Positions 1 through 51,348 of a DNA stretch of 64,000 nt are shown here, one piece after another. The stretch lies in the NCBI GenBank assembly GCA_009103225.1, contig RHPI01002823.1, positions 133,104 through 197,103 on the forward strand. The letters are read 5' to 3'. Origin of the DNA: Chlorokybus atmophyticus. Lineage: Eukaryota; Plantae; Mesostigma and Chlorokybus algae. Made by a program: the position numbers and the translations under genes. A model generated the notes under the pieces. The model did no database searches and was not told the DNA's origin. It saw only the letters and a program-made list of their open reading frames with translations. Each line of letters starts with the position of its first letter. Positions within the stretch are counted from its first letter, which is position 1.

Positions 1-748
1 GCCTCGTCGTCATGGTCGAAGCCAACTACCTGTCACGGGCAGGTTGGTCAGTGTCACGGTGCAGTGCGGTTATGAAGCATCACAGCACCTGACACATGAC
101 GTTACGAATAGTGTCCTCCTTGGGATAAACGTGGCTCTCTACCCAGTGGCCGTTTATGATTTCAACGACGGCATCTCGCAAATGCTGTTCACAGAAGAAC
201 AATCCGTTACAAACATACACACAGTGTCACAGTGTCACACAGTGCTTACCTCGTTGCCAATCTTCCACTTGCTTGGGGAAGGGTTGCTGACGGCCGAGGT
301 TGCCACGTCACGGCCAAATGCGTTTGGGTTGGGGGTTCCAATCGACCCTCTGCAAGCACAACCACGCGAGTCATGCTGCCAGCCATAAAAGATGCAACCC
401 TCACAGTTGCAAAAGAAGAACAACGTGCACAATGTATCCAGAACGCATGCAGTGAGTCACTGTGCTAGTCATGAAAGAAGCAAGCATCCAAGTTAGAAGT
501 TGAGCAAGAAGCGACGTGCACAGTGCATCAAGAACGCATGCAATCTAGCTTGCCCTTGCAACTGCGGTGTCAGGTGGAGTTGTTGTGATGTGATGGGCGT
601 TAGCGCGGGGTCTTGCTGCGATTGGTTGGCGACGGTTGCCTGGTTGAACACCGGGGGCAATGTGGACAACTGGCGCCGACCTCCACGACGAGGTGCACTT
701 ACGGATGGACCACGAGGCATCTCTCCAACTGATAGTCGGGTGCCGCAT
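1..748 (-). CDS. Hypothetical transposon cargo protein (runs off the window; 5' end uncertain)
   Basis: Clean GT-AG introns at 185-249 and 30-88 join in-frame exons: ...SNPSPSKWKIGNE|HLRDAVVEIINGHWVESHVYPKEDTIRNVMCQ|VVGFDHDDE. No recognisable domain. Confidence 0.5.
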
Positions 749-1028
749 GTTTAGCTGATAGTGGCGCTGCCGCCTCCAACGCTGCCGCCGACGGTTGGCC
801 CGCCCGAATGTACGAGGCGCGAAAACGAAAATGAGGCGGTTTTGAAGGTCTAGAGTCCCGCACTAGAGTCGCACTTGTAGTGCGTCCTTGCTCCTATGGT
901 TGAAAGTACGACTTATGCATTCGTGCCATCCATGCTTCGTACAACCATTGGTAACAACGGTTGTGTCGTAACATTTATGATACGACAGAGGCATCTCTCG
1001 TCCAACCCCAGCGATTGCCGTACAATGG

Positions 1029-1058
1029 CTCTGTCGTACCATCCATGGTACGACAGAG
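1029..1058. promoter_or_regulatory. GTACCAT-motif hairpin between divergent cargo genes
   Basis: CTCTGTCGTACCAT-cc-ATGGTACGACAGAG has perfect 14-bp arms. A degenerate copy of the same hairpin lies at 964-987, and TACGACAGAGGCAT occurs at 981 and 1049. Confidence 0.55.
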
Positions 1059-1313
1059 GCATTGCTCGATCAGCCCAAATGGGAGTTAGCGTGCACTCAC
1101 CCAAACACGCTTCATTGATGGCCGGATGATGGCACGCAGGGGCACCAGGTCGATGACGGGTCGAATGTCAGGCTTGATGGGCCTGGGTTCGACTAGGAGG
1201 CGGAGGACCAGGAGTCGGAGGAGGCGGCGGCGGCGGCGGCGTGGCACATCTTGCGAGAAGTTGTGGTCGTAAGAGTTCAAGCAGCGAAGCCAGCTACTAC
1301 CGGTCGCCACGTC

Positions 1314-3453
1314 ATGGATCATGGCAGGCGTCAGCAATGGGGCTGTCCAACATGCATCACCAACATTGGACAAACCAGCAGGCAAGCCATTAAAGACCAT
1401 CTTCACACAGAGAGCTGCTTGGTGGCTCGCTTTCTGCAACAGGGAGTGGATCAGGAGCTGCAGTCCTTGGAGCCCCTTGTCAGAACCATGCGGGACCAAT
1501 TGCGGCTGTGGGAACAAGCACAAAGGAATGCAGAGGTACGCTCAACAGTCACATGCATTTCCTTGCAAGAGCAATTTGTTTCTGAGCGCAGTCCATGTGA
1601 TATATGTAGCGTGGCTGCAGGCCTCCACCATTCACCCATACCCACCCTACAGTCAAGCCGACATTGCGGAAGCAAGAGCAGATAGACAGAGCTGGGCGGC
1701 GGTATGTTGTTGCCAATCTCGCTGTGCATGTTGACTGCAATGTCGGCTCCAATGCATGCCTACCTTTGCATGCTAGGATGTGCATGAGCGTGCGAAGTCG
1801 CGCGCGCGTGCCGAATCAAGTAGGCTGGGTTTGAGCACAGGAGCGCGTGGCCATTCGTCCGGCATTCAACCAATAGTGCATCAACCAGCAATGACGTAGT
1901 CCATGCAATCATTTGTGCATCAACCAGCAATGCCGCAGGTGACTGTTCGAAGCAACCAACTGATGACGGTGTGACGCAGTTTACTATTGCAATTGCAGTG
2001 TCGCAAGCATGCAGCTAACCCACATGTGATTGGTTGACAGCACCACAGTACACTAGGTCCTGTTGGAGCTCCTATGCAAGCCTGGATTCAATCCCATCAA
2101 CTGGTCCTTCAATCCCACTTGCTGATGGGTGCGGCGGCAATGCGGCATCACTCTAACATGCATGTTGGCCTGTTGAATCCCGACATGTTCATTGGGGCAG
2201 TGGCGCATGATGTGCCCATGGCTCACGAGCTCCGTGACGAGTCTGCGATCGAGGGTGGCGGGGAGAGTGCACTCAATACCACCTTGTCAGCCCCCATGGC
2301 TTCCCCTGCTCCATGTAGCCCACAGGCCATTGAGATAAGTCGCTGTCTTTTATGCTCGTGCCTTGGTAACAATGCGTCAGGCACTGCATAAGCTTATATT
2401 CGTCCTTTGCAACATTGTGAGCCATCTTATCCTGGGTCCTGTATACAGCCCCCCTTGCTGCATGCACAAGTGGTCTCACCTGCAGCTTCTGCTTCCCTCG
2501 CAGCCAGAGCGCAACCACCTTCCGCGGCACCAATCCTTCATGCACTGCCATCTCCTCCACGAGCAGCACCGGTGATTGCGGGGCAACAATCCTTCTTGCC
2601 GCTATCGGCGAGACCACAGCACAATGCAACAACCGATGTGGCTTCTACACCTACCTTACCCCACCCGCTGCAAGTAAAAGCCGGCAGTCTGCCCCAAACT
2701 CAGGTACTTTATCAGTCACTGTGACTCTTGCCGTCCACAGTTGGACACACCATTTGAGTGCTGTATGCGCATGCAGCAGGGGTCACCACCTGCCAGCGAG
2801 TCATCAAAGGAGCTGGCCGCAACCCGCATACGGCCATTAGTCATGTTAGGTGGCCAGCTCGCCTCATAGGACCACTTCAATGCGCCAACGGATGGTAATT
2901 GCTTATACCATTGTGTATTTCGCGCCAGGCCATCCATAGCGCAAAGTGACTTGGATGATCACGAGTGCCCCAGCTCGAGCAGATTATGGGCCATGCTGGA
3001 CACCATGGACGACGACGGCAGGGGGCACACTCTCCGCAAAATCACCGCCAAGGCTGTCGATGCAGGCGTGGCGAGCAGAATCGTAGACTTCTGCAGAGCC
3101 ACTGGTGCCGCGGGAGAGATGGCGCAGTATTACGACAAACTGCCTGCGACCATGTTGGCTGATGTCAACTGCAACATTGACCTAGCCATGGCCAAGGTGC
3201 GACAGATCGTGCGGAGAAAAGATGTGTACGTCGAGCACCTGCAGATGACCATGTTTGCCAACAAGCTGGGCTTGTTGATTGGCTGCGTGACCGTTCAGCG
3301 CGAGCATGGGGAGTGGGTGCCACGGCCCGGCAGCGCAGTTTGGGTTGGAAATAAAGAAGCCCCCAACTCAGTCCTGGTGGTGGGCAACACTGCTCCTGAT
3401 GAGCCAGAAGCACACTTTTGGCTCCTCAAGCCTGCAAGCACCGAACAGTGGTC
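1314..3453 (+). CDS. C2HC zinc finger + Pro/Ala-rich linker + OTU-family cysteine protease (deubiquitinase-like); 3' end lost in gap; possibly pseudogenised
   Basis: N-terminal CPTC-x14-H-x5-C. Exon ending 2703 splices in phase to 2741. OTU catalytic motif PTDGNCLYHC at ~2885-2915, VYVEHLQMTMFANKLGLLIGCV helix-strand and terminal EAHFWLL (catalytic His). In-frame TAG at 2867-2869 is either a nonsense mutation or a splice acceptor. Joining the finger to the OTU domain in one gene is inferred. Confidence 0.7.
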
Positions 3454-3885
3454 NNNNNNNNNNNNNNNNNNNNNNNNNNNNNNNNNNNNNNNNNNNNNNN
3501 NNNNNNNNNNNNNNNNNNNNNNNNNNNNNNNNNNNNNNNNNNNNNNNNNNNNNNNNNNNNNNNNNNNNNNNNNNNNNNNNNNNNNNNNNNNNNNNNNNNN
3601 NNNNNNNNNNNNNNNNNNNNNNNNNNNNNNNNNNNNNNNNNNNNNNNNNNNNNNNNNNNNNNNNNNNNNNNNNNNNNNNNNNNNNNNNNNNNNNNNNNNN
3701 NNNNNNNNNNNNNNNNNNNNNNNNNNNNNNNNNNNNNNNNNNNNNNNNNNNNNNNNNNNNNNNNNNNNNNNNNNNNNNNNNNNNNNNNNNNNNNNNNNNN
3801 NNNNNNNNNNNNNNNNNNNNNNNNNNNNNNNNNNNNNNNNNNNNNNNNNNNNNNNNNNNNNNNNNNNNNNNNNNNNNNNNNNNNN
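3454..3885. other. Assembly gap (N run)
   Basis: 432 N. Confidence 1.
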
Positions 3886-4848
3886 TAGGCATTGTACAAA
3901 GGTACCATTGAAATGGTACCTTTGTACAATGGCAATGGCAGTTCGTACCATTGACAACTCTGGCAATGTCAGTCCCCCTGCGCATGAAAACACCATTGAT
4001 AGCTCCGCCAAGCTATGCCCTTACAGGGGCGTGATGCCGAGGGTATGTGGCGTTTGGAAGATCGTTGGCGGCGCTGCCAGGGGCGTAGTGGGCATTGTGG
4101 TCGAGGTCCGGGATGAATTCCATGTTCGCACAGGGCGGGCAGGGTGCCGGAGGGGTGTCCTCGGTGTCAAACCCCACCAAGACTACCAAGGGCACATCCA
4201 ATGACAACAGTGACTCGGGCGATATCTTACAAGGCTCCCCCTCCGAGTGGGCAAAGGCACACCACAATACTGCCTCTAAGAAAATCCGACCCACCAGCAG
4301 CTGCGACCACGGCGACATGATTGAAGGGACCAAACAAGACTGGCATAACCAAGGTGGGTTACGATGCACTATCAATGCCACATGCTAGGATTCTTTTATC
4401 TTGCACATGCACAGCCTCAAGTATCTTGCACGTGACATACATTGTCGATACCACATGCACACCCTCATGCACAACCTCCAGTGTCATGCACATGAACAGC
4501 ATGACCAATCTCGCAAATGCACAGCCTATTTCTANAGGGGCTGACTCGTAGTGCAAAGGAGTCGATCACCCTACAGTACGCCCAAGACGCGCTGCATCAC
4601 CGCATGCGGCATGCCTCGAGGTGGGTGACGAAAGTTTGCAATAAGTGGGANGGTCGCAAAAGAGAAGCTGCGGAGTACCACGAACGGGTAATCCATGACC
4701 TAGTTTAATGTTCCAAGCGGTAATTAAGCAGTATGCTTGCAGATTGCCATGTTGGTCAAAGTGAACCGAGAGCAGCGCGGCAGGCTGACTGTCTGCCTGG
4801 CGGAGTGCAACAAAGCGGAAGACGAGGTAAGCGTGTGTATGCTGATGG
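3886..4848 (+). repeat. Copy 1 of a ~0.9-kb internal direct repeat (promoter hairpin + 5' exons of a helical/acidic cargo gene)
   Basis: Near-identical to 11303-12164; the ORF track gives matching peptides for both (…GGQGAGGVSSVSNPTK…, MLADCHVGQSEPR…). Copy 1 has an extra ~100-bp exon segment (4536-4650) bounded by single Ns. Confidence 0.9.
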
Positions 4849-4849
4849 N

Positions 4850-5661
4850 CAACCCGGCAATGTGCAAGAGCTATCTGCGGAGCAGAACTTCGACCTGCTG
4901 CAGCAGATGTACCTGTCGATGTCTGACAGTGGCTGTACGTCATACGGCACGTCGAGCTGATTCTGTGAAAGCTCGAAGAAAATGACGATGCGGGGGAGTA
5001 CACGAGTGACGACCGCCATGTCGAGGGCCTGGATGAACGCATGCTGGACGAGACCACCAAGACCAGCAGGTGGTGTATGGCGGCAGATGGGCAACAGGTG
5101 ATCAAGCAGGCAGTGGAGCGTTATGCTGCGCCATTCAGATGGGAGTCGCTACGCCTGCAACGCGATAACAGAGTTTGGTGGCAGAGGCAGCTTGCACACT
5201 TGCGTGCACCATGTGTGCTGATTTGTCGCATTGAAGAGCCACCCCCCCAGCGGATGGGGAGACGCCTTGTTGCAAGAAAGCGATGTGCCATGTCTGCATT
5301 ATAGCACATCAGAAGACTGTGGCAAATAAATCAAAGGATCTACAAGCGTGTCCCTTCTGCAAGCAACCTCACCCGTTTTGGTCGCCACGCCTGATGCAAG
5401 ACGCCAACATGTCGGCGGTGATTTGGCCCCCGCCTTGATGCCAATTGTGCGTGTATTGTAGTTTTGTGTTGGCTTCCTCTGAACCCTGTAAGTACACGTA
5501 TAGTTGCAGCATGGTGCACCAGAGAACTGCTGTTGTCAGAAGCATTGGCTGTACATATGTATGATGACTGCCCGGCGCATGAGTCAGTGCATGGCTTGCA
5601 TACCTCGCTGGTTTAGAGCGTGGTTGACAGCAACAAACTCGGACAGCGCTTTGGGTTCCAT
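4850..5661 (-). CDS. Hypothetical transposon cargo protein (spliced; truncated at an N junction)
   Basis: ATG at 5661 (MEPKALSEFVAVNHALNQR) with GT-AG introns leading into the open minus frame RLPSEWRSITLHCLLDHLLPICRH...HAFIQALDMAVVTRVLPRIVIFFEL. Divergent from the methyltransferase gene. No domain recognised. Confidence 0.4.
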
Positions 5662-5721
5662 GGCATGACAGCACAGTATTACTCTACGATCGTGGTAGTA
5701 TGCGAGTATCCTTATACTGTA

Positions 5722-5767
5722 GTACCATTAACAGATGGAGTACCATTCATGTTGATGTAGTACCATT
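5722..5767. promoter_or_regulatory. Triple GTACCATT direct-repeat cluster in a bidirectional promoter
   Basis: GTACCATT at 5722, 5740 and 5760 (18- and 20-bp spacing), between ATG 5661 (-) and ATG 5916 (+). Confidence 0.55.
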
Positions 5768-5915
5768 GCATGGGTTTGCAATAGCGTCCTTGGTACAGTC
5801 GTGCTTCACTTGAAGTTTGACCCATTTAGGGTTCGTAAGCTGGCAACCCTAAATTGATGCCCATACCCTAAAGTCTCGCTCAGTTTGTGGGCAGCCGTGC
5901 CGATTCCTATTTTGC

Positions 5916-7717
5916 ATGATGTCGGCGGCAGCATTTGAATCCCCCTCACCTAGGAGACCATGCTTGGTATGCCCACAATGCAATGCGTACATATGTGCCA
6001 ATGGCCGTAGGCAGCAAATGCGAGCACACTTGACCGGATGCCAGCGAGTGCAGACAGTGTGCCACGGTTCTAGTGCTGCTTGCTGGCATCACACCACACA
6101 CAATGTCGACGTGTTTCGCTGCCGCCTCGGCCAAGTGATGTGCAAGGAACCCGAGTTTTTCCATTGCGTGCAGTGCGTGTGCGAATCGTGCTCGCGCTCA
6201 TGCTTCGAGTGGCGAGGGGAACCCATGCGCTTCTTCACATGGACAACACCGGGACATGTGGTTAGTGGACAGGTGGTGGATGCTGTGGAGGTAATCCACA
6301 AGAGTGGACCGCGACGTATCACTGCATGTTATGTTGGGCATCACTGCATGTTATGTTGGGCGTATGCTTATTTCATGCATGTTGAAGCTGTTGTCGCTTT
6401 CAGAGCAGTCTTGCAAGGTGTGGGCGTGGGCAGTTCCATCCCCTGGCCGCTGTAGAGGAGGCAGACCATCGACCGTTCGACAGCGCACTGCATCGGCTGC
6501 GGAACGCAGTCAAGTTGGGATGCGAGCAGCTGATCGGTGTGAGTGTCATGGTGCATTGGCCGCTGGATGGGGAATGGTATGCGGGCGTTGTGGAATCATT
6601 CAAGCAAGCGTCAGGTCAGCATCGCTTCGTGGCGTGCGAGATTGAGGACGCATCATATATGCATGGTGCAATGGAAAATGTCTTTGCAGGGCAGCACCGT
6701 ATAGTATTCGATGACGGTGATCGACCACAAACCATCAACTTCAAAGGGCACAACGTATTCGCGTACACATCAGTTGACGGGGCACGCCATGTTCTGCGCG
6801 CCGAAGGGGAGAACGTCAACATCGCAAAGTAAGCCCGGACGGCATTATTGTTAGTCCCTGGCCAGCACCACGGCCAGCCTTGACCACATACACGCCATTT
6901 GACAACAAGCTGCACGCACACGCAGACCAAGGGCACTCGACCTATTCTGCCGCGGTGGCGGTGCCAGTGTCGGTCTATACCACGCAGGCTTTGACGTGAC
7001 CGTGATGGACATAAGTCCCTCCTCTGAGTACCCGCTGCCCTTTATACACCGCGATGTATGCACCCTGAGTGCAGGAGAGCTGAGCGAGTACGAGCTCATC
7101 TGGGCCAGTCCACCATGCCAGGGCTATTCAGGTGCTATCTCGGCACCTCAACGGGCGGCACATGGCACATCCTGGAGACACCAGGATATGATACCGCTCG
7201 TCCGACGTCTGCTGCTTGCAAGCCAGGTCAAGTTTGTGTTGAGAATGTGCCAGGAGCAGCTTCCTCATTCAGACCCAATCTGTCCCTTTGTGGCACGATG
7301 TTTGGCCTATCAACTTTCCAACACCGTCTGTTTGCGACACAGCCAGTGGTAGCTACCCCACCAGCATGCTGCTCGCACGCGGGCAAGGCGGTTGGACTGC
7401 TATCGCCAAACCTGTCCGCTAGCGCGAAGAAGACAATCGTGACATCAAACGCGCCACAGCAGATGTACCCGGTCTATGGCCTTCCAAGCACCAGGGGCGG
7501 CATTGCTGCGTGGCAAACAGCGCTGGGAGTGCCATGGATGACCTCGTCCATTTCCATAGCGAATGCATTTCCTCCCGCAGTGGCGGAGTGTATAGGGCGT
7601 CTCATGCTTGAAACAATGGATATGCGCTGTGACTACCCTCCTGTGTCATGGAACTATGAGGCTCGAGTGTGGTGCACTGTATTGATGCTTAATGCCACAC
7701 GGCGGACTGATTGTTGA
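5916..7717 (+). pseudogene. Zinc finger/Cys-rich + Tudor domain + DNA (cytosine-5)-methyltransferase of phage/actinobacterial type; one frameshift at ~7238
   Basis: CPQC-x15-H-x3-C finger. Tudor motif IGVSVMVHWPLDGEWYAGVVESF...HRIVFDDGD (intron 6615-6689). Intron 6829-6925 joins in frame to motif I LDLFCRGGGASVGLYHAGFDV, then DI-x5-YP, motif IV LIWASPPCQGYS, motif VI ENVPGA (frame shifted by -1), LCGTMFGL-x3-QHRLF, W-x2-ALGVPWM and motif X ANAFPPAVAECIG. Confidence 0.9.
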
Positions 7718-7869
7718 ATGTTGCATGGCACATTCGATTGTGGTGACAGCTGTGCAGTGACAGCAACCCGGTATTGTTCACGTCCACATGCAAAAGTCTT
7801 AGCATACGATTAGCAATGCCTAACTGACTGATATGCTCCAAACTCAGAGTAGTGAGACAAGTACATGTG

Positions 7870-10800
7870 TCACGTGGAAGTGCAGTGCACGTTCACCCAA
7901 TACTTGCCCTCTTGTACACGGGCGCTGTCCTTGTCAAACATGGGGAGCAGCTGGACAATGCCTTTTACTTGCTCCAGAGTCACGACATCGAGATGTGGAC
8001 CGCTTCGACGCTTTTCCCATTCCAGAGCGATGCACTTTGTGTCGCTCGTCACATCCAGCTTCGTGTACCAGCGGACAAACACGACCTCCTTTCCAGACGC
8101 GCTCGCCGCTACCACCCCACACCACCACGCGCAGAAAAAGGAGTGCTTGAGCCCACCACGTCACGTTCACACCGTCCTCATCACCTTCCAACTCAAGTGT
8201 AGAGAACCAAGGCCGCCCATGGAACATCCCAGTTCCGCGCGCCATGCTTACTCCTAATGTCATGTACACCGCTGCGCCTCCGTTCACCACGCGAACAGCA
8301 CGCCACCCGTCGGCCAACTCCAATTGTTCCCTCCTCAACCAGCTGTCCAGGGTGGCAGGCAGCTTGTCGGCGAATGGAGTCTTCAAGGCGACTTGGCGGC
8401 TACGCGCAGATCCGCTCCAGTTCGGGCTGGACTCCCTCCTTGTCAGCACATCCATCCATAGCAACTTGTCCGTCTTCTCCATGACATTACAGCACTGCTG
8501 TCGCGCCTGCGCCATGACCGAGCGCATCTCGGGATCCACGACCATGCCATCCTCTCTCACATATTCCGCACAGCTCCATGCCTTCAGGATACGTGCTTGG
8601 TAGTCCCGGTTGTTGCCACCACGCGCCCACCGTTTGATATTTTGGGCGTGCGTCTGCTCCATGCGGTTGGCGCTGAACCAATCTGGGTGTCCACTGCTGA
8701 CAATTGCCGGCCCAAAATGAGTGAGCTGATGCATCTTCTCGATCTTCCAACCTGACTTCTGTGCAGAATATGACGACAGTAGCGGATGCAACACTGCAGC
8801 TTTGAAGGCAGCCAGCTCGTTGTCGGCTGTGGTCAGGGTCTCTCTTGTGTGTTCATGCGCCTTGAGCAACTTCTTGTTCCACTAGGCAAGCGATGCGGCA
8901 GCAATGGTGAAGAAATCGTTGCCCTCACTATCGAGCAGCAAACCGTCTGCGAGGACCGGCAGCAGCTGCAGCACCGCCACTTTCTCCACCACCTGAAAGG
9001 AGTGGTCGGACAGGAAGAAATCTACTGTGCTTGTGGGTGCCTTCAAGTGCGAAACCCGCAGAGTCGCCTTGCATGCATTCAACCTGTGCACATCTGCTCG
9101 TGAGCACGTGTCGTTGGCTTTTGTGTTTAACACAAAAGCAACACCAAAGACGTGCCTGGCCTGCAGAATCTGTCTCGTGGATGGACGCATTCGTTCCTTC
9201 GCAGCGTCGTACACAGCAGCAAGCAGGTGGTCAACGATGCCTCCCAGCACATGCATTGCGTCAGGGGCAAGACGAGAGTAGCAGTCTGCTCCCGGCACCC
9301 GCAACTGTCGCCAACCCCACAGTGCATTTTGCTGCCAAACCACATTGCCTGGTTTCACAGAAAGCCATTCATCCTCACGAATGCCGATAATTTGACCATT
9401 ACCTCCTCGACATGCATGGAGTGCTGCTCTTTGAAAGCCTTAGCTGTCTGGCGTGCATTCCTAACACCGCTATGCAGGTCCGCCTGCAGCTGACGTGTTG
9501 CTGGTGTGTAGAAGGCCTCGGTTCTCAATTCCCGGTCCTCATCCATCTCCAACGGATCTGATTTGGTGACGAGACAAACATCGCAAGGATGTCGTGTTTG
9601 GTTGCCCGACACAGTGCGTGCAAGTGTGGCAGTCTCCTACAACACGACAAACTTAAATGTTCTACTGACAACATCCTCCATGCACTGTTTGCTGGCAGGC
9701 TGCATCCGGTTACAACCATTCATGCCCACTACCTGCAAATCGCTGATGTAGTTGGCAAGCGCGGGAAACACACGACGCTCGATGCCATTCGGGTCGATGA
9801 GCTGCAGACCTTCCCAACTCGCCCGCTTCTCATCCTCTAACACTACATTCAAAGCGTCATGAAAAATCTCACGTTTCCGAATGGAGAACGATTCCTTGCC
9901 CTGCGCCCAGGTGGGATGCCCGGCCACTGCGTGAACCACCGGCAGAAGCGCTATCATAACAACCCCCATGTTGCTAGCATACATGTCCCAACTGTAGTTG
10001 GCAAGCGATGCCATCAGAGGGTAGCCAGAGCGCTTGCCCGCGCTGTCCAGCGTGGTCTTGTCACTGTACAGAATGGCAGGCGCCAAGTAGGACGCTTCCC
10101 CCACCTCTCTCCTCAAATCCACCTCCACATCCTTCCACCAATCGCCCGTGGAAGGATGGCCAAAGCTGTGCTCGTCAGTAGTGTACTGGAGATTGAAGCC
10201 ATTGGCGGCATGTGGATTGCCATACAACTGCGCGAGCCATACCTGCTCCGACCAAGAGCATTACTTACTATGCTGGCCTTAGAATAGATACTGCATCGAT
10301 ACTACAGTAGGTACTGCATTTCACAGACCTTAGCCGGCATATATGTGACGCAGATGTCCTGATCCTCAGGGTCTCCAGGCTTGCGCAGGTCAGCCGTCGC
10401 GTAGTTCTGATACGGCAGCACACTCGCATGTGCATATGTGACATGGCTATGATGGTTGAAGCACATGCACCGCACACCGTGAACACATCTCAGACTGAGA
10501 GAAAGCAATCGTGGTCCGGAGGTAGCTGGCCACATGCACACCAGTCTCCCACTGGAGCTCTTCCGTCAGGATGAGTGCATTTCGGATGCACTTGATGATC
10601 CGCCCCATGTCGGAGGCCGACAGGCCTTGGCCGTTGTTGCACTGCACGAATGCCACTGCAAGAGCATGCTCCGAGCCATACCACCTGGATTCCGATGCGT
10701 GCGAAGGGACGCCTCCACTTCCATGTTGGCGTGCCACAGGTTTCTCAGGCACACGCACACATGGAAAGCCCTCGTTCACTTCCTCCTCCTCCTGTTGCTG

Positions 10801-11010
10801 CTGTGCGTGTGTCTCCTGGAGGAATCCTTCAGCATCAAGCATGTGAGCATCCTGGATCGAATTCCCCGGTTCAACATGACCCGCATCGTGCTGTAATGGA
10901 TGCTGGCCGACATACAGCTTCTGCTTGCACACCCTGCTGCTAATAATGTGCATGTAGACCGAGCTGCGTGTGGCGAAGCGCATGTGGCAATACGGACAAA
11001 GGACTCCCAT
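7870..11010 (-). pseudogene. Plavaka transposase with N-terminal C2HC zinc finger and C-terminal BAH-like domain; in-frame TAG at 8882-8884 and a frameshift near 8090
   Basis: Family motifs HPSTGDWW, AILYSDKTTL-x2-AG-x4-YPLMASLAN, EIFHDAL, GIERRVFPALANYISDLQ|E (intron ~9641-9732), PCDVCLV, LAPDAMH, KMHQLTHF-x2-AI-x3-G-x4-FS-x3-MEQTH-x3-IK. C-terminal VFVRWY...VKGIVQLLP. Start MGVLCPYC at 11010. Confidence 0.88.
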
Positions 11011-11071
11011 ATCTCACTACTAACATCGACACAGGTGTCGCCAATGTAACCTGCATCATATCCAGCAACAC

Positions 11072-11072
<1 letters not shown>

Positions 11073-11109
<37 letters not shown>

Positions 11110-11110
11110 G
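11073..11110. repeat. (GCC)n trinucleotide tract upstream of the transposase start
   Basis: cgccgccgcc... run. Confidence 0.9.
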
Positions 11111-11173
11111 CCACCGCTACCGCTACCCTTGCATGCCAGAGGCGGGAAACTTGGCCGCCAGTCACTGGCTCCG

Positions 11174-11368
11174 TCGTACCATTATAATGGTACGATCGAG
11201 CCATTGCACGTCCAGGGTGAGTCTGGATATGTATATATATATATATATATATATCCTGATTGAACCGTTTCAATGGTACGAAGATGCCTTTGCCAAAAGG
11301 TATAGGCATTGTACAAAGGTACCATTGAAATGGTACCTTTGTACAATGGCAATGGCAGTTCGTACCAT
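11174..11368. promoter_or_regulatory. GTACCAT-motif palindrome cluster plus (TA)n in the bidirectional promoter of the transposase and the helical cargo gene
   Basis: Perfect 22-bp palindrome TCGTACCATTATAATGGTACGA (11174-11195). (TA)n at ~11232-11254. ATGGTAC at 11273. Hairpin with 20-bp arms CATTGTACAAAGGTACCATT-ga-AATGGTACCTTTGTACAATG (11307-11348). GTACCATT at 11362. Confidence 0.6.
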
Positions 11369-12164
11369 TGACAACTCTGGCAATGTCAGTCCCCCTGCGC
11401 ATGAAAACACCATTGACAGCTCCGCCAAGCTATGCCCTTACAGGGGCGTGATGCCGAGGGTATGTGGCGTTTGGAGGATCGTTGGCGAAGCTGCCAGGGG
11501 CGTAGTGGGCATTGTGGTCGAGGTCAGGAATGAATTCCATGTTCGCACAGGGCGGGCAGGGTGCCGGAGGGGTGTCCTCGGTGTCAAACCCCACTAAGAC
11601 TACCAAGGGCACATCCAATGACAACAGTGACTCGGGCGATATCTTACAAGGCTCCCCCTCCGAGTGGGCAAAGGCACACCACAATACTGCCTCTAAGAAA
11701 ATCCGACCCACCAGCAGCTGCGACCACGGCGACATGATTGAAGGGACCAAACAAGACTGGCATAACCAAGGTGGGTTACGATGCACTGTCAATGCCACAT
11801 GCTAGGGTTCTTTTATCTTGCACATGCACAGCCTCAAGTATCTTGCACTTGACATACATTGTCAATACGACATGCACACCCTCATGCACAACCTCCAGTG
11901 TCATGCACATGAACAGCATGACCAATCTCGCAAATGCACAGCCTATTTCTACTTGCGGGAGCTCACAAGTCGCAAAAGAGAAGCTGCGGAGTCAAACGAA
12001 CGGGTAATCTATGACCTAGTTTAATGTTTCCAGCGGTAATTAAGCAGTATGCTTGCAGATTGCCATGTTGGTCAGAGTGAACCAAGAGCAGCGCGGCAGG
12101 CTGACTGTCTGCCTGGCGGAGTGCAACAAAGCGGAAGACGAGGTAAGCGTGTGTATGCTGATGG
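11303..12164 (+). repeat. Copy 2 of the ~0.9-kb internal direct repeat
   Basis: Aligns by eye with 3886-4848, with scattered substitutions and one ~100-bp deletion. Confidence 0.9.
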
Positions 12165-12385
12165 GCTAGTCCTCTGGCAGCACGCCACTCTTACAGCATT
12201 ACCAAATGCAGGTGGTCACTCTCAAAGCGACCATCAAGCGCATGCGCGTGCACGGCGAGGCGCTGACATTCAAGCTGAAGGACGAAGTAGCCGCTGTACT
12301 GTCAGCGAGCGAGGCAGCGGATGAAGATGACTCCGGCGTTGAAGCAGAAGACTCGTCGGAGGAGGAACAGGAGGAGGGGGTTTGA
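11530..12385 (+). CDS. Hypothetical helical protein with acidic C-terminus (transposon cargo; may be damaged)
   Basis: Exon-like segments MNSMFAQGGQG..., RKREAAESNER, IAMLVRVNQEQRGRLTVCLAECNKAEDE|gtaagc, ...RMRVHGEALTFKLKDEVAAVLSASEAADEDDSGVEAEDSSEEEQEEGV*. Confidence 0.45.
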
Positions 12386-12608
12386 GGAGGAGTTCTGAGG
12401 CAGGCACCACGGGTTGACAAGCTGCGCATGAGTCCGACAGCTAGACTCAATGTTATAGGATAGTTTCATGCGCAAGTCGGCTGCTCAGTTGTAAGTGGAC
12501 ATACTCTCACCACTGCCCGTACATTGTATATATTGTGGGCTTTTAGGTGCAAGACCAAACAATCAGTCCAAGGTTTGTACAAGCTGCATGGCATGTTAGT
12601 GTTGGCTT

Positions 12609-12934
12609 ACGGCAAGAATTGCCAACTTTTGTCAAACGGCAAGGGTCACATATTAACAGCAGTGTAACGGCAAAGAAACTGCCGGCTATTGCTGTCAGCT
12701 GTCCGTAACTACCGGTCAACGGCCGTCTGTGCACATCGACCAAAGGGTAACTGGTTGACAACTCTCGGCCGGTTAGTGCCACTGACAACCACTTTCGGCC
12801 CGCGGCCGTCTGCGTCAGTCCACTTAAGCCAACGGCAAACCCAACAGTCCAAAAGTAATATTTCAGGCAGCGACAGGCAGGCTCAGGCAGGCTCAGGCAC
12901 CAGTCAGTCCCTCAGTCCTTAGTCAGTCACCGTG
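12609..12934. repeat. Subterminal repeat region and candidate right terminus of the transposon
   Basis: ACGGCAA at 12609, 12636, 12667 and 12832. Short GGCAA/TTGCC and CGGCA/TGCCG hairpins at 12611-12623 and 12668-12684. CAGT/CAGG-rich repeats end in CCGTG. Confidence 0.45.
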
Positions 12935-12958
12935 TAAAATTTGCGACGAAGGAGGGTG

Positions 12959-13196
12959 CTACCGCCCCCTTTAATCCCCTACCCCAACACCACCACCACA
13001 GCTACGTCGCCGCCGCCGCTGGCAGCCAGGGGATAAATTGTGACAGGGGGACATGACTCTATTGAGGTCGCCATTGACGTGCGCAAATAGAATGTTTGTT
13101 AGCGAACATTTGAAGCACAACCATTGGCTTCAACACAATTTTGATAATGTTGGGTAGATATAAACGAAGAAGTATTCACAGACACGGTTACGGTAG
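12959..13196. mobile_element. Possible remnant of the same MITE family as 57207-58524
   Basis: 17-bp exact match GGGATAAATTGTGACAG (13030-13046 = 57243-57259). TACCCCAACAC (12980-12990) equals the TIR core. GGGGGAC motif present. Boundaries uncertain. Confidence 0.35.
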
Positions 13197-13777
13197 GCAT
13201 CTTGAATTCCGGACTATCCGTGCAAAGAAAATTGAATACGGTTTGCTGTCGAGTCTGATACACTGAATCGACTCCAAAGAGGGGGACACCACCATGAAGG
13301 GGGGATGATGTACAGACACAGCACCCACGAAGATGCTAGGTACAACATTGTCGAGATATGTACGATATTTGAGCACGAAGCACAGTAATGTATGCAGACA
13401 CATACACAACTATCTATTCCCAAAGTGTTCAAGTAGTGGCTAGGAACGAGTTTTTCCATTCTTGAAATTTGACCAAATCCACCCGTGGGGCGATACAATC
13501 TCAAGAGTGTCACATTTGTCCATGAACCCATTAAAGCCATACAATAATTGAAAGAAAGGGGCGCACAATTCGTGGCCGTATGGTATTGCGTGGCTTTTAC
13601 GGTAGCAGGTTGTGATGGAACGCGCCCTGCACCTAAACTTGTTTACAACCGCGCAACGGTTGCGGGCGGCAACACAAATGTTCTTGCATGTGATTTAGGC
13701 TTGCAGCTCTCGCATTCCTCCCAATTCCTGCCGCGATGCACCGTCCAGTTGCAGCACACAAGCACCACACCTCAATG

Positions 13778-15922
13778 TTATACACATGCAACACATACGC
13801 ATGCACGGTGAAGTGCACATGACATAAGGTTGACGCGGGAGGGGCCCTCATCTATGCACCTGTACACAGCAGGAGTCGAGTCTTGGTTCCTAGCGGCATC
13901 AATGGCACGAGCCTGCAATATGTGCAGGCCCTCTCCCACTTGAAGAGTTGTGAGTGTAGAAGCAATGACGTCTGTGGTAACATCCCATGGTAAGTACCAT
14001 CCAATCACCATGCGCGCAATGCAGTGTATGGAATTAGCTTCATGCACGTCTGCACGGTTGGTCAATCTTATACTGGTAGCTGACGCAGGTTTCAGTGGTG
14101 GCGAAGGAGAACATTGACTGAGTGTCAAAGGTTCGCGTGGAGGGTCCAGACAGCACGAAAGTGTCTGGACCGCCATTATCGATGATTCAGGAGTACTCTT
14201 CAGCCTTGTCAATGTTGCCGTTCGCGTCAATTATGCGCACGGTAAAGGTGTGCGGGCCCTCAGTGAGGTCTTGCAGGCTGACCTCATTAGGGAATGAGAA
14301 AGGCACGTATGGCCCGTTGTCGAGGCGAGACTCCTGGAGGCCGCTCTCTGTGGCAGTGATGGTGAAGAATGCGTCATCGGATGACGTGATCGACGTTGGA
14401 AAGGCCGTGATTGTCACTTCGGGCGCTACCATGTCGACGCTCCAAGTACAGTTCTTGGGTGTGGGGTACCACAGCATGTTGTCCAGCCCAACAGCACGCA
14501 CCTACTGAACAACAAGTACTTAGCCAATTGATATACACTCGGCGCTTCCAAGTTCTAGCAAACCAGCAAGCTTATCCATCACTGTGTGCAGGCCGTCCCT
14601 GACTCCCTTCACAGTGAAACTGGAGCCCTTACCCTTCTTCCACTTGGTGTTGTCGAGCTTCCACTCGTACACAAACTCGGTCACAGCAGAGTCGCGCGTG
14701 GCGAAGGGGGTGACGATTACGCCATCAGCCGTGTTGATAAACATTGCACAATGAGACGCGCAATGCAGATAAAGCAGACAGCGTATGCAGGAATCTACTT
14801 ACAGGACTGAGATGACGTCAGTGTCAGTTGGGTCCACTGTCCACTTGTACACGATGGGGTCTGGGTTGATGTTGCCAACAGCATCCAGCCGCCACAGAGT
14901 ACCAGTAGCTACCGGTAGAGAAGGTGCCGGCGGCAAAGGTTTCCTCCTGCAGGGCATGCAGCATGTTGGCGACATGTCCACCACACCAGCGTGTTCAGCA
15001 ACGCCACAAGTCACATCGTGGACCTCACACTAACCTCTGTGCACGTAGCGTTGTTGACATCACATGTTATGTATGAGGCCCCGGGCATCCACGAGTGCTC
15101 CACCTTGAACGCGCGGGCACTGTTGTCGGATGTGAACTGAATGCGCAGAGAGGTCGCAGCGGCTCCAAGCCTTTCAGTGGCAAGGAACTGAGCTCCCGTG
15201 TACTTATAATCTGCAGCAGTGAATGCATGACACGAATGGGTCCCGCGTTCAACCTCAGTTGATGCTGCTGCAGCAAAAATCAAAACAGCACGCTTGCCAA
15301 TAATCCAGCTAAAGGTATTATTGTCACCCGTGTTGCCCAAGCTGTCCCGAGCGCGGATGACAAGCTCGTACTCATCTGGGGGCAGGTCGCGGTATTCAGC
15401 TACAGAATCACCACTAGCGAAACGAATAAAGTCACTGCGCACATAGGGAGGTGATGTGGGCTCTATTGTTGAGTGCAGCACACATGGTTGAACTGCGCAA
15501 CGGCATGCATGTGACTTGCCTGCCATTGAATGCCAGTTCATATGTGCAGTCGTCGGTTTGAGGATATATCCGACTTGTAAAAGGTCTACGTGAGATAGTT
15601 GGGGTTGAGGTTTCCTGCCACGTCTTGCAATGTCATCTGCATGGAGATCATCGGCAACGCGTGGGTTGGAACACTCTGGTAAAACCCTCGTCCGACAATC
15701 TCTAGCCAGAGCTATAGCTGTCGTCAGTTCTGGTCTCAGGCTCCTGCATGGCGTGGCTGTCATGCATTTCCCAGGTCTCCTCTCCTCGTGCAAGCTCCGT
15801 CGCATGCACACATCAATCTCTCCGGTAGTTAAATTCCGGGGCTGGAGCAGCAGCGTTACTTTTGCGCAGTTCTGCCTGCTACCCGGCCTGCCTCTGCACC
15901 TCCACTCCAGCCCTGCCCACAT
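13778..15922 (-). CDS. Protein with 4-5 bacterial-type Ig/FN3-like repeats (probably extracellular); ends uncertain
   Basis: Repeated units YELVIRARDSLGN...FSWII, DAVGNINPDPIVYKWTVD, WSVDMVAPEVTIT...HTFTVRIIDANGN...YSWIID, ARAIDAARNQDSTPAVY on spliced minus-strand exons. Confidence 0.65.
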
Positions 15923-17060
15923 TGCACCAGCATTGCTGAGTTAGCTCGCATAGCCTTTTCGGGCGCCCCGTCTCTATGTTCACTGTGTCAAGGGGGTACT
16001 AGTCATGTCCTCTGTGCTTGCTTGCATTTCGGCGTGTGCGTACTCTTTGTGTGGGGACCTTGTGTTAGGCTGCACACATGTGCACGACTGTGACGTGAAA
16101 CAGTGCATGTTTCTACTGTGGTGTGGTGTGAGTGTGCGCTTGATGGTGCGAGCTGGTGGCGTCCATGCGGCTAGCAAGCCACGGTCGCATATATGGATAT
16201 AGACTGGTGCACGCACATGCATGCATGCTGCTGGCGAGGAGTTGTGTAGGTGCAAGTGAAAGGGGCAAGTAAGTGAGGTACCCCTCAGTGCGGCGAGTAG
16301 CGCTTCTGCCGCGCACTACTCTATGTCTGCATGTAGTTACTGTATTCGTTGGGGTGATTGCTGCTGTGATTGTTGCTAACCGCTGCTGTAACTGTAGTAC
16401 TAACCATGCTGACCGCTGTGACTCTTTATACGGTTGCTGATTGACACTGATGTTGGTGACCATTGTGATTGCCAGCTGCTGTCACTGCAATTCCAACCAG
16501 CTTGCTAACCTGCGAGATCGCGCCGTTTCGCGTGAGGGTTCAACTGACTCTTACCCCAAATATATCCCAGTGTGACCATACACGCCTTGACAAGTAGGCG
16601 ATGACAACCACTTGTAGCAATGGACAGCACTACCCCGCCCCCGCGCCTTGCCTTGCCTTGGCTGCTTGCTCTTGCAACTACTGATGCTACTGAACTTACT
16701 GACACTGCCTACCACAGGCCGCTGTGCTTTGGAATGGTTGGTCACAATCTGCTCCTGGCTGTACTCCTCAGCTCCCGCGCTTCCCTTGCATGCATATAGC
16801 TAAAGCACATGATGATTGTAACTTGCCCTTGCCTGGCTTGTGGCTGTGGTCTGATTGTGATGGTGTATAGGATATACGCACAAGAAGCAAGGCTGGATAC
16901 GTGAAGTGCTGTTTCGCACACGCATAGTCATGCAACATGCACACGGCAACACTACATCATTGCTATACAGATTGGTACATGGTCATTACCGGGTTAACCA
17001 CTATGACGCTATCACTAATGCTCATCCCCATTAGACATGCATGCAGGTTGTAGTTACCTA

Positions 17061-17752: not shown

Positions 17753-19877
17753 TCAACTATGTACAGGCGAGGATTTTTTCTCTACAATGTTCCAATTCCC
17801 AACCCTGCGTGGCCCACCACCCGCCGATGAACCGTTGAAGACTTCAACCACCGCACGTCGCATGCTGTCCTGCCATGCGGTTGCCAAACCTTTGATCGCG
17901 ACTGGCGGCTGCAAGTCCGTGGTGGCTGCTGCAAACGACTTGCGCGCTGCAACCATCATTGGCAACCTGCGTGCAGATACAAGCTCAGACCAACACAGTG
18001 AATGAATTGACCCTTCAACTAGTAACCGAATGTGCTTGCGGGCTGAATCTTAGGGATGCCCTAAGTAGACAGTACAGCAAAAGATAATTCGCCAGTGTGG
18101 TTGTGCTAACTGCAAGAGCACTTCTGCTTACTTGTAATCCGCGGCCGTAGCATCAAATGTTGCCGTCGGTGGTGTGGCAGGGTAGTCGCGCGGGATAAAC
18201 AACCGCATTGGCGACAGCTGCAAGAGCTGCGTACACATAGGGGCGCATCAGTGCTTGGCGCTGCCATCACTGGGCATCCCTACAGCAGGGTGAGGTTTGA
18301 CCAAGTTTATGCTGTGCATAAAATTCACTTACGGGCACAGCGGTGTAGCGGCAGAGCAACACCGTCCCACTGCCTTGAGCGGATGCCAGCGAAGAGCCCT
18401 GCTCGTCAACAGACATGCACGTGTCCAGCAGGCAAGCTGCCACCTCCAAGCACTCGTTCAACAGCGCTGTCGGCAACAGTGCCTATGCAAACAAGCAGCA
18501 CAACGAGTCAGATGCAGCCAAAACTCAGCAACAGCAATCATAGCTGAACAATGTCAAGTATGGGTTCAGTGCTCCTCCATCTCGCAACTATGCACATTTC
18601 GTATCACTATGTGATGTTTACCATATGACGCTGTCGCTTAACATCGCCTTCAACAAGAGACGCATCATCAGATTCTGATCTCCACTTGCGCACGGCTCCC
18701 ACGTTGGAAGAATCATCGCTGCCTTCTCTTTGCAGAGTGGCGGGATTGACTCGCCCATCATGCGTGCAGACGCCATCGACCAGAGACACTGCTCCAGTGT
18801 GATCAATCACTGATGGCGGCTGCACCACCGAAGACAACGCATCCTCCATTGAGCCGACAGCCCACTCGTCATCTTCTGTGTTGCCGTCAGAGCTGGGGTG
18901 CCCCCGAACACCGTCCAGGATGGCATCGATATCGTATGTTGCGATTGAAACAGCGGTCGGGGACGTGTTCAAAAATAACATCACCTGCATCTCACAACAA
19001 CAGGTCAGGCACATGACCATAGCCATGTGTGCCATTGACAAAGGACGAGCATGCAACATGGGCAATTATGCTTGGTGGCAAATTGCGTGCGCATGTAGGA
19101 GCATGCAGGTGTGCCTTGCGCCAACCTTTTCTGCCAGGCGCTGTGCAGGATCTACAACAGGGCTGGGAGGGGTGGTGAGCATGGCTGAGGACGGCGTTTT
19201 GGTCTCGATGCCCTCCACCACAAGTGGTGTAGTTGCACTATTGATAGGGGCCATTGGCGGGGTAGCGCCCACAGCTGACAACGCAGGTGATCCTGTCTGA
19301 TACACCTGTGAACAGGTTAGTGAGCACCTGTGGGTTTACAGCAAGCGATAGCAGGCAACACAAGAGCGGTGTCAAGCAAAGGAGGCCTATGGCCCACACA
19401 CAGTGGCAGTGAAGTGTTAAGACGCTACCTGGCTTGACATCGCTTGTGGAGGAGCAGCAGCTCCAGGTGACGCGCGCTGCAATACCTGCACAGAAGCATG
19501 GCATATGTCACCCTTGGTGGTGACAACAAGCTAAAGACTACCGCACTCCAAGATGGAGGACCGAAAACAGCACATGCACTTTAATGCACGCACGGAATGT
19601 TGCAAGACAATGCCGCCAAGCTACTGCACAAGTACCGAGATCTGCACAATAATGTGTTGCAATTATAGACCTGCTGAGGAGGAGTGGCCTGGCGCGGGAT
19701 TGGTTGCCGTTGCTGTTGCAGCAGCATCTGCTGCTGCTGTTGCAGCGCATGGTGCACCTGTGCTGAGGAAACCTGCTGTTGTTGAAGTTGCGCTTGCTGC
19801 AACCCTGGGTACTGCGGCTGCATCAGCTGTGGCTGCTGGCGCTGCTGCTTGAGCTTCTGCTGTGCAAGTGCTTGCTT

Positions 19878-19910
<33 letters not shown>

Positions 19911-20142
19911 CTGCTGCGCTTGCAGATGTTGCTGTTGCAGAAGTAGCTGCTGCTGCTGCTGCTGGGCTTGTGGCAGCAGTGGCTGTTGTTGCTGCTGCTG
20001 AAGTACCTGCTGCTGTGCTTGTATCTGACGTATAAGCTGCTGTTGCTGCTGTTCAATGCTTTGTCGCTGCTGCGGCTTTGCCGTTGCATGCTGCTTTTGC
20101 AACTGCTGCAACTTTTGCTGCAGTAACAAGTGCTGCTGCTGC

Positions 20143-20231
<89 letters not shown>

Positions 20232-21168
20232 TTGCTGCTGTTGCTGCTGCTGCTGCTGCATGCTTTGTTGACTGGTGCCCACCTGGTCATGGCATGCACC
20301 AGTTGAAGTAAACCGCATCGTGCACAAGCAGTTCAACAGTGGGCATAGAAGAGATGCTGTTTCGTGCCTGCGACTGTTGCTGCTCCAACTTGACTTGTCC
20401 ACCCTGTGGCGGCACTGCAGTTTTGGATTGTGCACTCAGCCGCTTCTTGGATCCTTCGACGAGAGTGGCAATCTGCTTGTCATATCGATCCAAGCTGGCC
20501 ATATCCACCATGACGGGTGTTTCCCCTCGCTTGGAGGCCAACAGCGGGATGATTCTATGCAGGAACTTTCTCACCTGTAAGAGCTGATTTGACAACCGTG
20601 ACATGCGGTGGCTGCAGAGGCCAGTAACAGAGAGAACACGCTGCTGCGAAACTTCTTACCTGTTCAATTTTTGTTGCTGCAGCTGCGGTGACTGCCGGCT
20701 GCTTAGCAACCTGTGTAAGGCTCCTGTACAACTCAACCAAATCTGCTCGGTATGTATTTCGCATCTTCTCAATCTTTTGCCAATACAGTTCCTCATCAAC
20801 CGCGCTCAACTCTACAGCCATCTGCAACCGACACAAATACTATTACAGCAATACCATGGCGATAAGCCTGAATGGGCAGTGCTGTCTGACACCAACAGCT
20901 GCCCTGCTGTGACATGCAAAGGGCATGGCACATGGCAAATCACCTGTGTCGGCTGTTGTGCCACGGCTTGCTGTTGCGGATTGTTTACAGCAGCTGACAT
21001 GCCTGTGATGGTCGATGTGGCGGTCATACTGGGTGATGCACCACGCGGGAAGGCTGCAGATAACAGTACAAGCAACATTAGCGCGAACCCCAGACCTTGA
21101 CCATACAAGCAGAAGGCAGTGCTAACCTGCGGCTCGTTGAAGTCCGGCGCGCGAGTTGTCTGGCATAA

Positions 21169-21238
<70 letters not shown>

Positions 21239-26609: not shown

Positions 26610-28215
<1,606 letters not shown>

Positions 28216-46557: not shown

Positions 46558-51348
<4,791 letters not shown>

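Follow-up and report, generated by a model that had tools for sequence, protein, structure and literature searches.

A Tudor-fused C5 DNA methyltransferase gene tail to tail with a decayed Plavaka transposase gene in a eukaryotic draft contig

The first 11-13 kb of a 64-kb stretch of Chlorokybus atmophyticus contig RHPI01002823.1 (a eukaryotic draft assembly, GC ~0.53 and unlike human DNA; the whole stretch analysed is called the window) most likely forms an island whose genes are lineage-specific and have long exons, built around a single decayed Plavaka transposon in an intron-rich, green-alga-like genome. Plavaka is a family of cut-and-paste transposons related to CACTA/EnSpm-Mirage-Chapaev (CMC) elements. 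Within the island, a Plavaka transposase gene lies tail to tail with a gene that is predicted to join a PDS5C-type Tudor domain to a compact C5 DNA methyltransferase. Our preferred reading, which we hold tentatively at a probability of about 0.45, is that the island is a decayed composite Plavaka element carrying the Tudor-methyltransferase gene, and perhaps small orphan genes too, as passengers. This window cannot show the transposase and the methyltransferase gene moving as one transposon.

The island is set off from the remainder of the window by its gene structure. Long open frames fill the first 11-13 kb, and ordinary cellular genes in short exons lie to the right of ~13 kb; island exons span ~80-480 codons, against exon matches of roughly 50-80 codons in the flanking host genes for methionyl-tRNA synthetase and exostosin. 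A first-pass annotation had proposed that these 13 kb form one multi-gene Plavaka transposon with its own chromatin toolkit. It read the gene content largely correctly; its observation is partly confirmed and its interpretation partly supported.

A transposase gene and a Tudor-methyltransferase gene, tail to tail

The transposase gene (Table 1) was identified as proposed, by a match to the Plavaka domain well above the curated cut-off (PF18759, 9640-10260 on the minus strand, E = 3.9e-23, 82.6 bits against 26.3, model positions 58-227). A C2H2-like finger with weak Pfam matches follows the ATG. In the exon model, exon 2 (~10242-9733) holds the Pfam Plavaka core, exon 3 (9636-9403) bears 'HPCDVC' and exon 4, starting at 9331, bears 'APDAMHVLGG', with introns of 96 nt between exons 2 and 3 and 71 nt between exons 3 and 4. 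Aspartate-containing stretches are readable (ILYSDKT, ISDLQE and APDAMH), and the stop lies at 7870-7872 or 7934-7936. The sole close relative of the transposase core is P0001, a 134-residue fragment from a 552-bp ENA contig, which is 69% identical and itself carries PF18759. A protein search returned no homologues of the 315-residue C-terminus, and locus scans with a Plavaka alignment returned none in the JGI metagenomes or IMG/VR.

The transposase reading frame is not intact. It holds an in-frame TAG, and the single frame-keeping intron that could remove this codon, of 111 nt, was rejected, as it deletes from the surrounding peptide a stretch that we take to resemble conserved transposase sequence. 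The frame reading '...VVFVRWYTKLD...LLPMF', presumably the transposase C-terminus, runs on to 7870, which makes a frameshift near 8090-8135 likely as a second lesion.

Facing the transposase on the plus strand, the methyltransferase gene comprises four exons (5916-6290, 6404-6614, 6690-6828 and 6926-7717) joined in phase by GT-AG introns of 113, 75 and 97 nt. Its stop codon (7715-7717) and that of the transposase are ~150-220 bp apart, in the tail-to-tail layout described at first pass. The single intron style also described there reduces to introns that are simply short and of GT-AG type (71-113 nt across both genes).

The catalytic domain is interrupted by one missing nucleotide, which separates an N piece (6927-7238) from a C piece (7241-7714). 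Both pieces are collinear with one relative, P0002, in BLASTP (N piece to residue 118, C piece from residue 120). The N piece matches PHROG 363 'DNA methyltransferase' at E = 2.8e-16 and, below the cut-off of 22 bits, PF00145 (a weak match of 20.4 bits, E = 3.8e-4). For the C piece, 412 relatives were found with HMMER (E ≤ 1e-3 among 1.84 billion representative proteins; best 4.8e-17), none of them above 47% identity. The C5 motifs I, IV, VI, VIII and X are present in order (DLFCRGGG, SPPCQ, ENVPG, FQHRLF and NAFPPAV); motif I reads FCRGGG, against FCGxGG in 86% of relatives, with K, C and N also occurring at the R position. With the transposase frame stopped by a TAG and the methyltransferase frame shifted by 1 nt, this copy appears dead and would be a relic, not an active element.

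Upstream of the catalytic domain, 6404-6826 matches the H3K4me1-bound Tudor domain of Arabidopsis PDS5C (PDB 7DE9, E = 4.5e-5), and the 41 aligned residues take in the W-P-x-D-x-x-Y-x-G-V-V core. Splicing out the 75-nt intron would give '...ESFKQASG/QHRIVFDDGD' (the slash marks the junction), continuing the Tudor pattern; searched alone, the 45-residue second Tudor piece had no match in PDB. At the junction with the methyltransferase, '...NIAK/PRALDLFC' recurs where relatives including P0005 and P0007 begin. The predicted GT-AG model is coherent throughout and confirms, at the level of the gene model, that Tudor domain and methyltransferase form one gene. The Cys-rich exon that precedes them (5916-6290) had no matches in our searches, Pfam among them. 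Checked by profile and structure matches, the domains named in the first-pass annotation hold for Plavaka, for the methyltransferase (through PHROG 363, PF00145 being weak) and for Tudor (through 7DE9), and fail for an OTU protease, discussed below.

The nearest relatives of the methyltransferase (~40% identity) lie on giant-virus-like contigs that are gene-dense and orphan-rich. One of these, L002, carries topoisomerase II, the ribonucleotide reductase small subunit and MIP, another (L003) Rpb1 with an intein and PolB, and a third (L010) Rpb1, Skp1 and two DNA methyltransferases (DNMTs). Short relatives of ~210-230 residues, named site-specific cytosine methylases in IMG, match PHROG 363. An MBD is inserted in the relatives P0002 and P0037, and P0130 has an N-terminal zf-CW; judging from these domains, such viral genes would couple a 5-methylcytosine (5mC) writer with a reader of either 5mC or H3K4me. 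The tree of the C piece is poorly resolved and groups the window enzyme with the giant-virus-contig set (SH-aLRT 78-86). By sequence similarity, the catalytic core is assigned to the phage/giant-virus gene pool, in which it would have been joined to chromatin readers several times, and not to DNMT1, 3 or 5. No orthologue was found in sequenced algae among the 1.84 billion representatives; with no relative above 47% identity in that set, we conclude that the gene was acquired horizontally, as cargo often is, and does not belong to the conserved genes of algal hosts.

Members of this methyltransferase family (P0002, P0003, P0004, P0037 and P0130) were located on contigs L001, L002 and L005-L007, two of which have giant-virus hallmark genes, the others being short and gene-dense. 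The MBD insert in the family sits between motifs VIII and IX.

Motif clusters, element ends and assembly state

A 21-nt motif, CAATGGC-N4-TCGTACCATT, has 6 matches in the window at up to 3 mismatches (0.13 expected), all within 955-1064 and 11163-11292; one more copy on the right (11352-11371) has a spacer one base shorter and falls outside this count. Several copies make 42-44-bp palindromes. The two full-motif clusters stand ~130-365 bp upstream of inward-facing genes, a 1.2-kb open reading frame (ORF) on the left and the transposase on the right (150-365 bp upstream of its ATG), and bracket ~10.4 kb. The GTACCAT core is concentrated in positions 1-11.4 kb, with 14 of the 24 occurrences in the window (p ~1e-5; ~1e-4 when the repeat copy R_A, described below, is left out). 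Upstream of the methyltransferase gene we find the 8-9-nt core of the motif (three direct copies of AGTACCATT, Table 1) and not the full 21 nt. The shared promoter motif of the first-pass annotation is thus borne out as a shared upstream motif.

Empty mini-elements were ruled out as an explanation of the 42-bp palindromes, which have no flanking duplications. In two metagenome contigs (L008, 1040-1130; L009, 90-170) a palindrome of >80 nt has the centre CTGTCGTACCAT..ATGGTACGACAG, equal to the core of the window palindrome at 1029-1058. These were set aside as relatives, with the same 24-nt core, no other similarity and ~3 chance matches expected; the identity is probably chance. An exact scan of IMG/VR for the palindromic motif core returned nothing.

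Element ends were sought as 5'-CA..TG-3' type termini (TGT..ACA or CATCA..TGATG) with a 2-3-bp target-site duplication (TSD). The search covered the window, and the left end may lie outside it. The CACTA-like terminus that the first-pass annotation placed near 12934 was not upheld: the stretch contains TGTAA and has neither an inverted partner nor a TSD within the window. A long terminal inverted repeat (TIR) between 860-1260 and 11050-11450 was ruled out, the similarity being at motif level only. Far to the right, a 71-nt direct repeat (57239-57309 and 57653-57723, 414 nt apart, 93% identity) begins with 17 nt (GGGATAAATTGTGACAG) that recur at 13026-13046, just right of the proposed terminus.

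The window has assembly gaps at 3454-3885 and 58334-58442, plus five single Ns. A 0.9-kb segment, R, is present in two copies, R_A and R_B, at 96-98% identity and consists of a palindrome-rich upstream region and the 26-codon first exon of a small gene: 3886-4534 is 98% identical to 11303-11951, and 4653-4848 is 96% identical to 11969-12164. The gap edge and the single Ns 4535, 4651 and 4849 are the very points at which the similarity ends, and we therefore read these Ns as contig or scaffold joins. The interval 3454-4849 is a patchwork of repeat-derived mini-contigs, whereas 4850-11302, with the methyltransferase and the transposase, is gap-free. Long terminal repeats were ruled out as a reading of R_A and R_B: the interior holds a DNA transposase without gag/pol, R combines a promoter region with a first exon, and R_A itself is scaffold patchwork. 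Beyond R, the two copies run into unrelated second exons, with RING-like Cys-rich frames in one and an acidic tail in the other. The RING-like frames, recognized by eye downstream in small gene A (5150-5440; CVLIC..., CHVC...CPFC), are unrelated to gene B and may be interrupted by a frameshift at a C7 run near 5240.

Of the proposed cargo, the OTU protease was not confirmed. The '444-codon ORF' behind it (2870-4201) is open solely since N translates to X, and runs into the gap. Its catalytic loop, P-DGNCLYH, is identical to that of EschOTU (6w9s), a weak match (E = 1.6), and 'HFW' lies 12 codons before the gap. It has no match in Pfam (even at E ≤ 10), PHROG or NCBIfam and no homologue in the protein search, and a single-sequence AlphaFold2 model is unusable (pLDDT 36); attempts by profile, homologue and fold all failed, and the loop motif alone matches. 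The orphan genes claimed at first pass were recovered as open frames without Pfam matches; these include the frames at 1197-1731, which have no similarity to the transposase N-terminus either, small gene B and other orphan ORFs. At the left edge of the window, 83-456 on the minus strand reads as two apparent exons of one gene (GTAAGC donor near 252, stop near 83) with no family match.

Outside the island, two host-type genes were identified on the plus strand: a class I methionyl-tRNA synthetase (47594-48172; PF09334, E = 7.6e-9, with a 54-residue exon match at ~47.6 kb) and an exostosin GT47 glycosyltransferase (24905-25411; PF03016, E = 7e-12, with a 78-residue match at ~24.9 kb). By eye, the minus-strand open frame at 33301-33960 is rich in proline (SPPPP/KPPP repeats), in the manner of hydroxyproline-rich glycoproteins of the cell wall. 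Long imperfect trinucleotide repeats of CAG/CAA type occupy 19580-21370, with 43 overlapping copies of a 156-nt register, and encode poly-Q or poly-S/N runs on either strand. At 27786-28049 a (GA)n microsatellite of ~190 nt, preceded by (CACG)n, has a single N mid-repeat, likely an assembly join in simple repeat. Rfam and tRNA scans returned nothing.

Table 1. Positions of the features discussed, in window coordinates
Feature	Position	Strand	Basis or remark
Left 21-nt motif cluster, 3 copies, including a 42-bp perfect-type palindrome (1023-1064)	955-1064		Pattern count
Orphan open frames, 162 and 153 codons, with CPTC...HLH zinc-finger-like stretch	1197-1731	+	Downstream of left motif cluster
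OTU-like open frame, runs into assembly gap	2870-3453	+	DGNCLYH Cys loop at start; HFW
Assembly gap, estimated length	3454-3885		No frame or continuity claimable across it
Repeat copy R_A, mini-contigs 3886-4534, 4536-4650 and 4652-4848	3886-4848		Bounded by gap and single Ns
Small gene A; exon 1 4749-4826 (MLVKVNREQRGRLTVCLAECNKAEDE, donor GTAAGC) common to gene B	4749-5440	+	Read from sequence
Three direct copies of AGTACCATT	5722-5768	+	156-194 bp upstream of methyltransferase gene ATG
Gene for Cys-rich N-terminus, PDS5C-type Tudor and compact C5 DNA methyltransferase	5916-7717	+	GT-AG exon model and matches
1-nt frameshift in methyltransferase, between ...KFV and ENVPG, just before motif VI	7239-7240	+	BLASTP against P0002
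Plavaka transposase gene	7870-11010	-	ATG 11010; three-frame read-out and Pfam
In-frame TAG in transposase frame	8882-8884	-	Three-frame read-out
Right motif cluster, copies at 11163, 11186, 11272 and 11352-11371; palindrome 11306-11348	11163-11375		Pattern count
Repeat copy R_B	11303-12164		Spans the divergent upstream region together with small gene B exon 1
Small gene B, orphan, acidic C-terminal tail	12065-12385	+	Exons 12065-12142 and 12197-12385
'CACTA-like terminus' of the first-pass annotation	12900-12934		Not supported as transposon end

Competing explanations

Several observations count for a composite element. The lesions in both genes fit joint decay of a selfish unit, the presence of R twice at 96-98% identity with assembly breaks at its borders is typical of a multi-copy family, and the two full-motif clusters bracket the gene set, with the motif core upstream of the methyltransferase gene. 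By analogy, the giant red-algal Plavaka elements with chromatin-modifier genes (see below) provide a precedent for a passenger. In such an element, the 21-nt dyad motifs at 955-1064 and 11163-11375 would serve as binding sites for the transposase, a protein with a C2H2-like finger and a DDE core, which would cut and paste the unit. The PDS5C-type Tudor would dock the accessory protein on methyl-lysine-marked H3 tails (the Arabidopsis domain reads H3K4me1), and the compact giant-virus/phage-type catalytic domain would then deposit 5mC on the element or on host chromatin, possibly to the benefit of the element.

A number of results weigh against this interpretation. We find no inverted pair with a TSD between 1-1100 and 11200-13300 and no TIR in 1-16000, and the published Plavaka termini cannot be placed in this region of the window. 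One copy is seen, with no paralogues of island genes elsewhere in the 64 kb, and no related loci turned up in the searches of protein, metagenome and viral collections. Together with the apparent death of the copy, these results leave the first-pass claim of one bounded, mobile Plavaka element with cargo unproven. The island is not foreign in composition (GC 0.543 vs 0.523, CpG observed/expected 0.77 vs 0.76), and its tetranucleotide distance lies inside the window's own range, with no contrast to host DNA. With its three spliceosomal introns and plant-type Tudor, the methyltransferase gene is built as a resident host gene would be, and both lesions could be draft-assembly errors. The motif clusters would fit promoter elements as well as they would fit subterminal transposase-binding sites. 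Finally, the OTU-like ORF is tied to the transposase-methyltransferase pair by scaffolding alone, across the gap and three single-N joins.

A more specific history is doubtful, in which a chlorophyte giant Plavaka captured a giant-virus-type C5 methyltransferase and joined it to a host PDS5/MSH6-type Tudor, giving a transposon-virus-host chimera and the first known chromatin-guided 5mC writer on a cut-and-paste element; such an element would be a counterpart of the TET-carrying Plavaka/KDZ elements of fungi and of the red-algal Plavaka elements with an N6/N4 methylase and SET. It is rather unlikely that the two genes are neighbours by chance, with a small transposase-only Plavaka inserted, and later decayed, next to what is or was a lineage-specific gene resident in the host (put together in the algal lineage from a virus-derived catalytic domain and a host PDS5/MSH6-type Tudor). 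The three canonical short introns, the green-lineage type of the Tudor, the host-like composition of the island and the lack of a TIR or TSD around both genes all agree with such an arrangement, as does the distribution of the motif, which is complete upstream of the transposase and the 1.2-kb ORF and reduced to the 8-9-nt core at the methyltransferase gene. However, a catalytic domain with a frameshift, if this is not a sequencing error, speaks against a function kept up in the host, no sequenced alga has an orthologue among the representatives searched, and the GTACCAT core is concentrated in the island, with three copies upstream of the methyltransferase gene itself.

Because the methyltransferase is of giant-virus/phage type, a viral origin, which the first-pass annotation had not weighed, also has to be considered. 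The island would then be a fragment of an endogenised giant virus or large virus-like element, ameliorated and invaded by introns, in which the methyltransferase, the OTU-like ORF and the orphans are viral and Plavaka rode in or inserted later. We regard this as improbable. The giant-virus-like contigs of the nearest relatives (L002, L003 and L010), the fusion of relatives to the eukaryotic readers MBD and zf-CW and the weak grouping of the window enzyme with the giant-virus-contig set all point toward a virus; the recurrence of one motif upstream of several genes is reminiscent of the way viruses use promoters, and DNMTs of giant viruses and the endogenisation of viruses in green algae have been described. 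Yet no giant-virus core gene (capsid, PolB, packaging ATPase or transcription factors) has a Pfam match in the island's main open frames, tblastx of the island against the giant-virus-like loci matches the methyltransferase alone, IMG/VR holds no Plavaka relative, GC, CpG observed/expected and tetranucleotide profile are those of the host, and there are multiple spliceosomal introns. A partial assembly artefact, compatible with any of these accounts, would mean that 3454-4849 and the linkage of the OTU-like ORF were made by scaffolding and that the 13-kb unit is not as drawn. The exact coincidence of the R_A/R_B breaks with the gap edge and the three Ns argues for it, but the 2-4% divergence shows R_A to be a separate copy, as opposed to one set of reads placed at two sites, and the transposase-methyltransferase pair is gap-free; as an explanation of the locus it, too, has little probability.

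Relation to known systems

Plavaka has been reported in chlorophytes, and giant Plavaka elements with chromatin-modifier genes have already been described in the red algae Bostrychia and Chondrus, where the accessory genes PAG1-3 include a DNA-methylase+SET and a putative 2-oxoglutarate (2OG) oxygenase (bioRxiv 10.1101/2025.02.11.637652). The first-pass statement that no description of a Plavaka chromatin toolkit was known calls for qualification. A C5 writer with a Tudor is not among the red-algal genes; our literature searches found no such fusion beside a Plavaka transposase, and it would be the new part, if real. The red-algal elements resemble the island in that an algal Plavaka-lineage transposase lies beside predicted DNA/chromatin modifiers in a unit of >10 kb, with most copies degenerate there too. 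They differ in their enzymes, an N6/N4-type methylase (PF01555) fused to SET plus a ParB-like/2OG-oxygenase gene, in contrast to a C5 methyltransferase fused to Tudor. Ends, TSDs and many copies were curated for the red-algal elements, whereas none of these is demonstrable in the window.

In fungi, Plavaka/KDZ transposons carry TET/JBP dioxygenases (Iyer et al. 2014, as summarised in PMC12730594). They likewise combine a CMC-related transposase with a 5mC-pathway enzyme, but their cargo is an eraser, a 5mC oxidase, whereas the window gene is a writer, and the termini given there (TGT..ACA, or CATCA..TGATG with 2-3-bp TSDs) were not found in the window. Should the Tudor-methyltransferase gene be genuine cargo, DNA-modification enzymes would have been taken up independently in three Plavaka/KDZ lineages, a different one each time: fungal elements carry TET/JBP erasers, red-algal elements an N6/N4 methylase with SET, and the element described here a C5 writer with Tudor. 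Manipulating their own or the host's epigenetic state would then be a general strategy of large cut-and-paste elements.

In dinoflagellates and charophytes, the retrotransposons that carry DNMTs (de Mendoza et al. 2018, PMC5890265) are alike in that a mobile element is proposed to bring its own C5 methyltransferase. There the DNMT lies within the element coding region, in hundreds of copies, and includes the eukaryotic Dnmt3 type (SymbioDIRS-Dnmt3), whereas the window has a separate virus/phage-type gene beside a DNA transposase, in single copy. The 'giant repeats' of Amoebidium (bioRxiv 10.1101/2024.01.08.574619) are also lineage-specific, intron-poor gene clusters flanked by a Plavaka transposase, in a genome with giant-virus-derived DNMTs, but they form tandem arrays of up to 50 kb that are rich in tyrosine recombinases, of which the window island has none.

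The closest likeness of the catalytic domain is to the C5 enzymes of phages (PHROG 363) and giant-virus contigs, which are 38-47% identical and share FC.GGG, SPPCQ, ENV, an RHRLF-like motif and a MYPVYG...IPPA tail. Viral C5 enzymes are also fused to readers (MBD, zf-CW); the window gene has a Tudor instead, and its spliceosomal introns, additional Cys-rich N-terminus and frameshift also set it apart. Irrespective of mobility, the predicted protein joins a giant-virus/phage-type catalytic core to a plant-type H3K4me1-reader Tudor. Because viral relatives join the same core to MBD or zf-CW and the window gene joins it to Tudor, comparison of these domain architectures suggests a repeated, convergent coupling of the compact enzyme to chromatin readers at the virus-host-transposon interface.

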